A stretch of 62,990 nt of DNA, counting the filler, from Choristocarpus tenellus KU-1152 (lineage: Eukaryota; Protista; Phaeophyceae), in assembly GCA_964200185.2 (NCBI GenBank). It is 12 parts of 12 records of this genome, joined end to end, with 100 filler letters (N's around TTAATTAATTAA, not from the genome) between each part and the next. Parts side by side here need not be neighbours in the genome. Positions count along the whole stretch, not along the records: positions 7,801 to 12,318 come from CAXNAD020014194.1; 11 more parts are not named here. One strand, 5' to 3'. The notes under the pieces are model-generated. The model worked only from the letters and a program-made list of their open reading frames with translations, was not told the origin of the DNA and did no database searches. Position 1 is the first letter of the stretch, and every line of letters begins with the position of its first letter. The position numbers and the translations under genes are program-made. This document shows positions 7,683-12,451 of this stretch, piece by piece.

Positions 7683-7968
7683 GTAAGTTTTTTTTTTTAT
7701 NNNNNNNNNNNNNNNNNNNNNNNNNNNNNNNNNNNNNNNNNNNNTTAATTAATTAANNNNNNNNNNNNNNNNNNNNNNNNNNNNNNNNNNNNNNNNNNNN
7801 ACCCCCCCCCCCCCAGATACTTTGACCCTGCCCAAAGGAGAACAACTAGTACTCTGGAGTAGTATATTATCCGAAAAAGAGGTTACATGTACCTGTGCTA
7901 AAACGCTGCAAAAGGACATTAACGGGAAATTATTATTTTCAATGCAGTGAATGACAATGCTGCATCAC

Positions 7969-10895
7969 CTTTTCAAGAACACCATTACCGTTGAAGGCAA
8001 ACTCGGTAATGACATTTGATCCATATTTCGCATTGAGAGAGTCCTGAAATGCGGCAAAGGTTTCCATATCCTCTCCGGACATCCGTTCCTCCTGATGAGG
8101 GCAGCGAGTGTACAAGGTGCATACAGCCAACACAAGAAGAAGAAGAAAGTGCAACAATGTCATCAGTCAACACTTCTCGGCGAGGAGTTGTATCATATCT
8201 TAGCAGTTCAACGACCTGTGTGGGCCCCAAAGTGCATCCATCCCCTAACAGGTGATGGTCGCCTCTCTCTCTTCATGACTGACGTACAAGATGTGAGCAC
8301 AGCAAAGCCATAAGCGGATACCATAGTTTGAAGTATATCATCCTTCACGAGTGATGTACTATCTCACCACTCCCTCATTGTGATCTCCATCATACACCCA
8401 CTGGGCTGTGCCGAGGAAAAGGTCATCCACCACAGGGCCCAGGTAGTAGCGCCTTTCACCCTGGAGCAGAATGCATTCAGAGTCGGAGTTCGGGTTTAGT
8501 TACATTCAATCGCAGCAAATAGACAATTCAATATTGAAGATCTTGCCTTTGTCAAAGCGGTAGGGTATCTCGAGGGTATGTCGTCAACAAAAGGTGTAAA
8601 ACAAGACAACCTGAAGGACTTGCTAATTTTCGCATAAAACCTCTTCACTCCTGTCCACACGGCTGAGAGCTGTTGCTTACAGTCGTCTGTTCACCTGGAA
8701 AGCACCCCTGGTGGCCCACTCAGCAAAAAAGTTTGCCCAAGCCCACGAGCCCATGTCAAACCAAGCAAAGCTGTAAAAAATGTGAAGCTCTTCAGGACCG
8801 TCATTCCCAATCCATTGAACAGCAGACACAGACGGTTGGTCCTCCGAGCCTTTCAAGAAAGAACCTGAAGCATCCGCGTATCTTGGGGGAAATTGAGAAT
8901 TGATTCAAAGAGAAAGGAAACGCAGAGGGGTAGAAAGGATTTCCGTCTTGTTAGTTGCATCTCCAATCTTAAGACCAAGCCTCAGCTCTTTCGAGGCCAC
9001 TAAAGTGTTGCAGTTGCAGTTGTTGGTGCTAATTGCCCGGGAAACATCTTACCAAAAAAATGGGACACAGGAAGTAAGTTTGGATATTTTGCATCATTAT
9101 GACCTTCAACACCTTGAAAATGCAATCTCAATCAGACACAACAAGTTAATTTGAGGGAGGAAAAGGAGTGGAACTCAATCCTCATCCATTTAGTGATATA
9201 GCATCACTTCGTGCCTTTGCTGGGTAAGAGTCATGCTGGCAAAATCAGGGCAGGCCACACGCAACAGCACTTGCAACTGCCACTTACGCGACCAAAATAG
9301 TGGCTTCTCCTTCGACGGTGGAGTTGGACGGTGATTGCCCCACTACTGGTCTGGTAAACATGTTGTTGGTCCGGGGGTTGGTCCGCATGTCGTCCTTGCA
9401 AACTTTGCAGATAGCATTGCCCTCCGCTGCAAACAACATGTGTAGCATTAAAGTGTTGTTACATTCGAGAAGGTTTCCATTAGCGAAAAAGGTATATTGC
9501 AGAGGACGCACAGCACAAGTTAGAATTGGTGTATGTCAGCAAAGAACCCTTTAAGGGCAATATAATCAAGTTTTTCAACACGGCCTTGCTGCCATTGATT
9601 TTTTCGTTCGTAACTTGCATTCAGTAGTTGTTATATATGTGGTCACTCACCACGGTCAAGCCTGCCAACTTATTGCCATTACATTGAACTAAGCTCTAGG
9701 CCTTACAGGAACCACACGTCGACATACCAATCTTCACTTCTTGTTCTCTAAGATTGAAATTTTGTGCATCCTTTCTTTCACAACAAAGGCCTCATTTCAA
9801 TCATTGCGCTGTTGTTGTCACTTACGAGTCAGCCTCAGACCCTCAGCGGTAGGCACTTCAGCAGAGAAAAGTGGCCCAGCGAAGTCCGGTAAGACCTTTA
9901 ATCTACCTCGCGCTTCTTCATCGTTGATAGTGTCCGCACTATCGAAGTAGACGACCCGAACCTAGGCATAGAACCATCCATGGCAGAAGCGTTTCCACAC
10001 ATTAGGGAGAAAAAAATCCATCGTACGTTCGACATACTCAGAAGTTTATTGTAGTTGTGAATCTCTAAACGGTATGAGATAAAGTCACAACATCGCAAGG
10101 ATACCTTACCGAAAATTTTCTGGCATACGCCTGAAGCTCTGTCTTCTGCTCGGCTGTGGGCACGATACCCACGTAGATCGAGTCGCACTTTCCTGACCCG
10201 TCCGCGTTCGTCAAGTCTAAGGTGCCAGTAGGGTTTACCAATACCTCCTTCGCGTCAGAGACCAGAGGGGAGATGAGGCAGGATAAGTTCTTCGCAGGTG
10301 GTGGAGAATGTACGATGTAGTGAAGATCGGGTATTGCACCCCGAACTGAGTGGTGACTACAAACAACGCCCTTGCACAATGACGACTGTTGTTTAACTGG
10401 TCGCTGCAAAACAAGAAGACACAGTCTTGCACAGGAAGCCATCGCAAACCTGAGAGGCAGACCAGAAGCCCTTGTACCACTGAGACATGACGTAAGGCTC
10501 CGCCACACCCCCGACGTCTGGGATCTGCCAGGATATTCGAAGGAATGGGAGTAGATTCGACGTGGGAAGGTAAGAACGGCATGTGGTCGATACCTCAGAA
10601 CGGTAGTCACGATGCCGACTTTCGTCTGAGAGACTCCCACGCAGAATGCGACCAATTTAGCTAGGTGCTGCTCTCTTTTTCTACATGCGTTTCAGTTGAC
10701 GGGTGGGAATGTTGATGCTTCTGCGCACCCTTGCGCAACTTCGACTTGCCGACCGAAGTTCAGTGGACTCTTATTCTTTCTTACAACATTTTGGCTGAGA
10801 TTTCGATAGGCCACTATTGTCGTTCGCCTCAACACATGGACTACCCTCACCAGGTCGCTCGCTGCCAAGATGCATGGCTGCAGATCCACGGACAC
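7969..10895 (-). CDS. Agd3-like polysaccharide deacetylase (CBM87-like N-terminal region + start of CE18-like domain); partial, 3' end cut by contig start
   Basis: Phase-consistent GT-AG exons: 10895-10851 (VSVDLQPCILAASDL), 10524-10450, 10247-10110 (EVLVNPTG...ELQAYARKFS), 9961-9826 (VRVVYFD...), 9426-9288, 8881-8695 (...EELHIFYSFAWFDMGSWAWANFFAEWATRGAFQ), 8460-8368 (GERRYYLGPVVDDLFLG...), 8091-7969 (...FQDSLNAKYGSNVITEFAFNGNGVLEK). Possible upstream exon 11261-11227. WxTRGxFxGxRRxYLxxxxDDxFL and E-x-x-x-NGNG match Agd3/CE18-family motifs. Confidence 0.8.
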
Positions 10896-11487
10896 CTGTC
10901 CGAGCGCAGGAGACAACAACGTTGCAGTGGTTGCATTATTATACTTTCACTGATGTTGTGGAGGTAAGATTTATACTGTACGTAAAAGGGGATGACTCAA
11001 TAGATAAGATCAGAAGTATATACAACTTTTAAAAGAGGGTTGTCGTTTCGAAGACACACTATTTCTGTTTTTATGACATATTATGTCCCTCCAACATTTT
11101 GTAGATGTGTGATGGGGAAAAAACAGGTGAGGTGATATATATGGAAGTACATATTATACTCATATATACTCGATAATTGTGTATCATTTGCGTATTTGGT
11201 ACCCTGCTTACTACTGCAGAAAGTACCTTTGCCGAGGTGTGGCCTATAGCATTTTGGAGATCTGTGAAATAGTTGGAAAAAAAACTAGATTGAAAATGCA
11301 TTATACGGATATTTAAAATACTATGGCGAAAAAATCGCTCTTCCTTCCCTTCTCGCCCACCTTTGTTACCCTATTGTTCGGGTGACATGGTACAACTGTT
11401 AGTGCGAACTTTTGGGCTCGTAGGGAACAATAAATGCGTTACTTGTACTATGATAGTACGGGTCATCGGTTCAGTATTAAGTGTGGG

Positions 11488-11555
11488 TATAGTTTTCATT
11501 GGTTTCCCCCCTGACACATCTATCTGCAAAATGTGAGAGGGCATATTAAAAATAA
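11488..11555 (+). mobile_element. Solo 3'-tail fragment of the CRE-like non-LTR element (hairpin + AAT-rich tail)
   Basis: tagttttcattggtttcccccctgacacatctatctgcaaaatgtgagagggcatattaaaaat; other copies at 19715-19778 (-), 22098-22135 (+), 22150-22200 (-), 56237-56300 (+), 56617-56668 (+), degenerate 20110-20160 (-). Confidence 0.7.
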
Positions 11556-12451
11556 AGAAGTGTGTATTGATTGTGTTATCGATATGATGGCGGGATAACA
11601 AAACAGTATTATATGACCTTACCGAATTGGCAAGACCCACGCATTTTTTTCTTCTCATTTTTCCCATTTTTCTTTTTTCATTACTTGTTTTTTCTTCGGT
11701 ACTACTTACTACCTTCTTTCCACTACTTTCCACCATTGGTCTGTGATCCCAATCACTACTGTGATAATAATGTACCATAACTTCTGTACAACTAAATAAA
11801 TCACCACAAAATAGTCATTATTTTCCATTCTTCGCTACTAGGGTAAATATATCACAAACTGCATCACTCAATATGCCACTTCAATATTCTGAGGGCTTCG
11901 TATAGACCATAATACTCTCTAAACAAATTGGAAAATATACAAAGCATATTTCACATTCTTGTATCCCTTTTCATGGATCGATTGATTAAAATACGATACT
12001 GGATATGGTATGTTCATAGTGTGCATGTGTGATGAGCTCTGTTCATTTGGTGTTCAGATTGTAGATGAACCAAAAGATTAAAATACTAGTAGATGTGATA
12101 ATACAATGCGCTTCTATTATTTTTCTATTCTGTTTCTACTACGACTTCGGCGATGGTAACGACCAGATGATCAGATGACATACCCACATACGTACGTGTG
12201 GCCCGAACGTCTTTATTTTTGGGGTTTGATTGATACTACAATAAGTGTGAATCGTGTGATTCTGTGGCGGCGCGGTTCACTCAGGCAAGGGTGGCGAAGA
12301 GAATCACCGGGCAAGACGNNNNNNNNNNNNNNNNNNNNNNNNNNNNNNNNNNNNNNNNNNNNTTAATTAATTAANNNNNNNNNNNNNNNNNNNNNNNNNN
12401 NNNNNNNNNNNNNNNNNNCACCCCCCCCTCCCTTCCTTAATGACCTCCAAG

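Follow-up and report, generated by a model that had tools for sequence, protein, structure and literature searches.

The window analysed here is the whole stretch of 62,990 nucleotides, and the gene considered lies on the minus strand of one piece of it, at 7801-12318 (CAXNAD020014194.1, from Choristocarpus tenellus). Eight exons can be placed there. Exon 1 (10851-10895) encodes the mature N-terminus with a DLQPC motif and opens a predicted CBM87-like domain, which runs through exons 2 (10450-10524), 3 (10110-10247), 4 (9826-9961) and 5 (9288-9426) and ends in exon 6 (8695-8881); a predicted CE18 barrel begins in exon 7 (8368-8460) and continues in exon 8 (7969-8091). All seven introns are of the GT..AG type and 148-406 nt in size, the end phases of exons 1 to 8 are 0, 0, 0, 1, 2, 0, 0 and 0, the frames are compatible across all junctions, and the 312 codons contain no stop. 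No internal repeats of note were seen. Downstream (3′) of exon 8 the gene is interrupted by the end of the piece, where a run of at least 14 G/C letters (7801-7816) is probably the reason for the contig break. The piece carries the 5′ 40% of the gene, which is one paralog of an intron-rich brown-algal family.

The spliced model was handled exon by exon, and database relatives served as proxies for the full-length search, folding and tree. Searched singly, the exons match consecutive, abutting segments of the C. tenellus protein P0080 (residues 3-306), with identities of 93, 95, 80, 59, 65, 73, 79 and 73% for exons 1 to 8, and the same collinearity is seen in many other relatives. Because each exon alone matches abutting stretches of one protein, the exon model is beyond chance. 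The intron positions are common to the gene in the piece and to genes of Choristocarpus, Discosporangium, Scytosiphon and Ectocarpus; the intron-rich gene is therefore at least as old as the common ancestor of those genera. The coordinates, the collinear matches and the shared introns together confirm the eight in-frame, stop-free minus-strand GT-AG exons of the initial annotation.

Three public sequencing runs (X1, X2 and X3) of one organism and study contain the stretch. Introns are covered like exons in X1 and X2, whereas depth in X3 is almost confined to exons and repeats, and for this reason we read X3 as RNA, a run type inferred from coverage. A 1498-nt contig of X3, about 85% alike, lacks introns 1, 2 and 6 (326, 202 and 234 nt) exactly, so that both junctions of exon 2 are visible in it, and lacks intron 7 roughly; across introns 3-5 it has 359 letters against 365 exon letters expected. 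At that likeness the contig is read as the spliced product of a close paralog. This paralog matches none of the loci L003, L008 and L009. A second X3 contig matches exon 8 without a difference and then continues with 26 unmatched letters beyond the donor, as would be expected from the spliced product of this copy or of a near-identical one.

The initial annotation had exon 1 open at 10895 behind an AG acceptor, which most likely does not hold, as the exon continues into the remnant of a signal peptide (10896-10949, minus strand; in-frame reading ...ATLLSPALGQ). The AG at 10897-10896 probably closes a Gln codon: similarity at the DNA level to the gene in C. tenellus L009 runs past it to about 10918 (82% identity over 10846-10918), and three relatives (C. 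tenellus L009, Discosporangium L008 and Scytosiphon L013) each have their ATG, signal peptide and DLxPC motif within a single exon 1. A new coding exon further upstream was also considered, and tblastn of the relatives finds none. The upstream signal peptide that had been anticipated is therefore found in part: its second half is in frame, but an in-frame TGA stands at 10949-10947, 17 codons upstream of 10895, and the nearest ATG (10936-10934) is out of frame, whereas the relatives have both a complete signal peptide and an in-frame ATG. An X2 contig over 10723-11193 shows one 1-letter gap, its position within the contig not being listed. At L009:5433-5537, where the C. tenellus gene P0080 is modelled as 5′-partial, an in-frame ATG and a full signal peptide lie just upstream; the L003 locus of the same species has unannotated upstream exons that resemble exons 2-3 of the piece.

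This copy may thus be impaired at its start codon or 5′ end, and the missing start may reflect damage to a duplicate, an allelic difference or an error in the assembly. That it is a decaying duplicate, with paralogs such as the commoner one in X3 carrying the function, is a serious possibility that we put somewhat below an even chance; it is compatible with the main reading given below. The in-frame TGA and the sole nearby ATG, out of frame at the relatives' start site, speak for decay, as do a Pro in place of a conserved Leu/Tyr at 8795, the low depth of the X3 contig relative to the paralog and the lack of any X3 contig over exons 4-5. Against this, 312 codons are kept without stop or frameshift, the splice sites are intact, and changes relative to C. 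tenellus L009 are biased to third codon positions (59, compared with 27 and 20 at the other two). The X3 contig identical to exon 8 departs from the genome at the donor, and the gap in the X2 contig indicates that alleles or the assembly may differ. The letters at 8781 and 8795 differ from the family consensus and from the sequencing-run contigs alike.

Outside the gene, a high-copy repeat at 11487-11563 (strand unassigned) recurs with 80-89% identity in two C. tenellus loci, is very abundant in the sequencing runs and is absent from the Discosporangium, Scytosiphon and Ectocarpus loci compared. Together with 11068-11124 it makes up two pieces, in opposite orientations, of a short repeat of Choristocarpus that lies upstream of the gene; the paralogs in L003 and L009 likewise have several clustered copies on their upstream side. 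A further repeat at 12246-12318 is of extremely high copy number, with a summed contig depth above 200,000 in X1 and no match in Rfam. The shared repeat at 11487-11563 points to C. tenellus or a close relative as the host, GC content and intron sizes of the piece are consistent with this, and the piece differs from all three C. tenellus loci fetched. P0122 on L024, considered as a continuation of the gene, is a different paralog.

These observations bear on whether the contig comes from a fungal or bacterial contaminant, which we regard as highly improbable. Agd3 has mostly been described in fungi and bacteria (PMC7229062), but the introns are common to four brown-algal genera, the repeat is shared with C. 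tenellus, the fungal Agd3 P0125 matches the piece weakly, and GTDB genomes searched with the patterns of the clade contain no relative. Collinear C. tenellus matches, shared introns and the shared repeat contradict contamination, and, with C. tenellus paralogs as the closest relatives, they uphold the earlier view of a resident nuclear gene in a brown-algal host.

The protein search with exon 6 retrieved at least 54 proteins, at least 32 of them at E<=1e-10, and the named ones looked up are all brown algal; no named ochrophytes outside the brown algae are among the matches listed. Full-length members occur in Choristocarpus, Discosporangium, Sphacelaria, Ectocarpus, Scytosiphon, Pylaiella, Hapterophycus, Cladosiphon and Undaria, with several in most species; those with PF25115 include C. 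tenellus CAM9244706.1 and CAM9308757.1 and Ectocarpus CBN75521.1 (UniRef100_D8LD68) and CBJ25803.1. More distant matches come from fungi (Agd3) and Physarum, along with unnamed proteins. When single exons were searched against PDB, plasmids, viral and metagenome contigs and the Atlas, the outcome was blank or noise, and searches of NCBIfam and Rfam gave nothing. Brown algae have many such paralogs, of which this gene is one, and the single copy seen here is not special. Members of the family combine a signal peptide, a CBM87-like domain, a CE18 barrel, a small beta domain and often a Pro/Thr-rich tail; some have an added WSC or GH114-associated domain, the latter in Cladosiphon. The Scytosiphon L013 and Ectocarpus L014 copies both adjoin the condensin gene Cnd2 and are therefore syntenic orthologs. 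In the slime mould Physarum there are three Agd3-like proteins (P0130, P0135 and P0139), two of them with a GH114-associated domain, and its slime may involve related chemistry.

An Agd3-like deacetylase of family CE18, as proposed in the initial annotation, is supported at several levels. Exon 8 alone matches the Pfam family Agd3_CE (PF25115) with E 1.6e-5 and 24.5 bits over 41 aa, under the whole-protein cut-off of 27.6 bits, and full-length relatives exceed that cut-off with 93-170 bits. When a profile of 21 relatives was compared with the PDB, Agd3 (6NWZ) was the sole significant match (E 4e-54). In this alignment, with Agd3 residues numbered as in PMC7229062, D377/D378 correspond to DD (VVDDLFL, exon 7), H510/H514 to HTxxH, R613 to PR and M666/H668 to YMFHQ. 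These catalytic motifs are conserved in nearly all full-length relatives, both algal and viral; the piece holds the first (8427-8422), and motifs 2-4 lie beyond its end. As aligned, the Asp-Asp pair would be the catalytic, metal-binding pair that had been suggested for it. The AlphaFold model of the relative P0059 (pLDDT 79.5) also has 6NWZ as its best match (E 1e-39, TM 0.78 by target, 774 columns), followed by human NDST1 (E 1e-11) and PelA. A model of P0080 residues 1-233, the region of exons 1-6 (pLDDT 86.7), again matches 6NWZ best (E 1e-7, TM 0.66), with human NDST1 second. The assignment of the family to CE18, with all three Agd3 domains recognized by fold in relatives, is thus supported.

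The proposed CBM87 module stands in fold and falls short in formal assignment. The P0080 model shows an alpha/beta/alpha fold N-terminal to the CE domain, but exons 2-6 do not match Pfam CBM87_Agd3, and relatives match Pfam CBM87 weakly (19 of 26 at E<=1, the best at 2.2e-6), below the cut-off. Of the residues lining the cleft, Agd3 W292 aligns to the Phe of an FTRP motif in exon 5, and W344 to the Phe of a WFD motif in exon 6 (8763-8755), with the Trp adjacent. The N-terminal domain, assigned mainly from modelled folds, is best described as CBM87-like and not formally CBM87.

The family extends beyond algae. Giant-virus (Nucleocytoviricota) copies are found on nine metagenome contigs (L004-L007, L010-L012 and L022-L023). 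The viral genes P0059 and P0145 are intronless and lie between genes for VLTF3, A22 resolvase, D5 helicase and a hybrid histidine kinase, a neighbourhood that may resemble that of phaeoviruses; the neighbouring D5 helicase groups with Nucleocytoviricota, and the contigs are present in IMG/VR. A second set of contigs (L001, L002, L015 and L016) is gene-dense, with an ORF cover of 84-94%. They have a common neighbour gene of no assigned family, and L002 and L015 also carry a Spherulin4 (Sph3-like) gene in the vicinity of the Agd3-like gene. A protein of 525-545 aa without a Pfam family is encoded beside or near the Agd3-like gene at L001:2759-4396, L002:4503-6080 and L016:4384-5961 (37-44% identity), in three contigs that have little else in common, and is a possible partner of the enzyme. 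A short GT-AG intron interrupts the Agd3-like gene at L002:10490-12244, as does a long insertion that starts with GTGAGT and holds an HNH/His-Me homing-endonuclease gene on the opposite strand. Between L015 and L002 the neighbours are 100% identical, whereas the Agd3-like genes are 77% identical and the endonucleases differ, which suggests homing or gene replacement.

A tree with fungal, bacterial and stramenopile homologs had been proposed as a check. Built with no confirmed bacterial sequence included, it unites the algal, viral and gene-dense copies in one clade (100/100), which a long branch separates from fungal Agd3. The non-algal copies are scattered over two or more positions among the algal paralogs, and 0 bootstrap trees have the algae on one side; an AU test, however, from which 18 rows were dropped as fragmentary, redundant or long-branched, does not reject algal monophyly (p = 0.119), and with that value we do not treat viral acquisition from algae as an established fact. 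Introns shared on both sides of the viral branches lead us to lean towards host-to-virus capture, and the family would have been exchanged between brown algae and giant viruses.

Agd3 is a mould enzyme that makes a biofilm sugar sticky, and a fungal GH114 member cuts the Agd3 product. By analogy with Agd3, the Asp/His/His set of the algal enzyme would bind a divalent metal, the adjacent Asp, positioned by the Arg, would activate water, and a His would protonate the leaving amine, while the aromatic cleft of the N-terminal domain would extend the groove and feed a long polymer into the active site. An N-acetyl-hexosamine would thereby become a positively charged amino sugar. We consider it on balance probable that this is a secreted Agd3-like enzyme deacetylating a polymer rich in alpha-1,4-GalNAc that the alga makes for its own matrix or adhesive, and that it belongs to a family exchanged with giant viruses. 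The cationic product could act as a cross-linker of anionic alginate and fucans or attach to surfaces, and the deacetylated polymer would be trimmed by algal GH114 enzymes. Brown-algal genomes have an average of 5 GH114 genes (PMC11468063), the family having been amplified in that lineage (PMC11468063; bioRxiv 2024.02.19.579948). Such a polymer is the most likely substrate because of this GH114 expansion, the GH114-associated fusion in Cladosiphon, the Spherulin4 neighbour and the inactivity of Agd3 on chitin (PMC7229062).

Other substrates have to be weighed, since identity to Agd3 is about 21%, and at such a level NDST1 and PelA have the same architecture but different polymer substrates. 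The same fold could serve another hexosamine glycan, either glycoprotein chains that contain GlcNAc or, as in NDST, a polymer that is later sulfated. The second rank of NDST1 for both models, the long branch to fungal Agd3, the divergent N-domain and a weak Sulfotransfer_2 gene about 9 kb from the viral copy in L004 and L005 all point this way; however, Agd3 scores far better than NDST1 for the P0059 model, and the co-expansion of GH114, together with the links to a GH114-associated domain and to Spherulin4, speaks for alpha-1,4-galactosamine chemistry, so we regard this alternative as unlikely. Alternatively, the secreted deacetylase and a GH114 hydrolase might break up foreign bacterial or fungal biofilms of the Pel/GAG type on the thallus. 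Ega3-type GH114 requires a deacetylated substrate (PMC7229062; PMC11468063), and the pair would therefore form a degradation route; the enzyme is moreover secreted and multi-copy, and no Gtb3/PelF synthase or epimerase partner is seen near any algal or viral locus. Retention of the gene by giant viruses would fit remodelling of the host surface better than surface hygiene, though, and the WSC and Pro/Thr tails suggest residence in the wall, which makes this second alternative quite improbable. Of the GAG/Pel partner genes looked for beside the gene (synthase, epimerase, GH114 and GH135), none is seen in the piece or at the algal loci that were fetched; a Spherulin4 gene is near the gene in L002 and L015 only.

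Brown-algal walls are described as consisting of alginate, fucans and cellulose, and we know of none of these with an N-acetyl group to remove. A wider hypothesis, which we put forward tentatively, is that brown algae make an as yet undescribed cationic alpha-1,4-galactosamine polymer, GAG- or Pel-like, in their matrix or glue; an ancient Agd3-like family and the expanded GH114 enzymes would process it, and giant viruses of algae would have acquired the deacetylase, or else introduced it, as a means of remodelling the surface. Among titles and abstracts, we found no paper on a galactosamine polymer in brown-algal walls. No paper on Agd3 in brown algae or giant viruses was found either, in a search with incomplete coverage of subscription journals, and the brown-algal CAZyme papers (PMC11468063; bioRxiv 2024.02.19.579948) do not mention a deacetylase. 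An Ectocarpus member bears the automatic UniRef label 'Agd3 deacetylase domain-containing protein'. The enzyme family is thus known and the gene seems to be a further member of it, while the algal and viral clade seems undiscussed in the literature. Taken with the reported and unexplained expansion of GH114, the deacetylase family yields a testable prediction, namely an amino-sugar polymer in the matrix or adhesive of seaweeds, or else an anti-biofilm enzyme pair. It also adds brown algae, a slime mould and giant viruses to the fungi and bacteria in which CE18 was known.

Among known systems, A. fumigatus Agd3 (CE18 plus CBM87; 6NWZ; PF25115, PF25116 and PF25117; PMC7229062) shares with the algal family the three-domain fold, the four catalytic motifs, a secretion signal and perhaps aromatic residues at the binding cleft. 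The algal family differs in its identity of about 21%, an N-domain below the CBM87 cut-off, a C-domain that does not match Agd3_C, conserved extra cysteines, up to 20 exons and multiple copies, with no GAG cluster seen at the loci fetched. Human NDST1 and the Pseudomonas PelA deacetylase have a related two-domain deacetylase architecture; however, identities are 8-13%, structural scores are much weaker, and the algal family carries neither a sulfotransferase nor a hydrolase domain. The brown-algal PF25115 proteins belong to the same clade and have the same exon layout, the copy in the piece differing in its want of an in-frame start codon. The giant-virus copies, with 40-60% identity per exon, have the full motif set and a signal peptide, and unlike the gene described here they are intronless.
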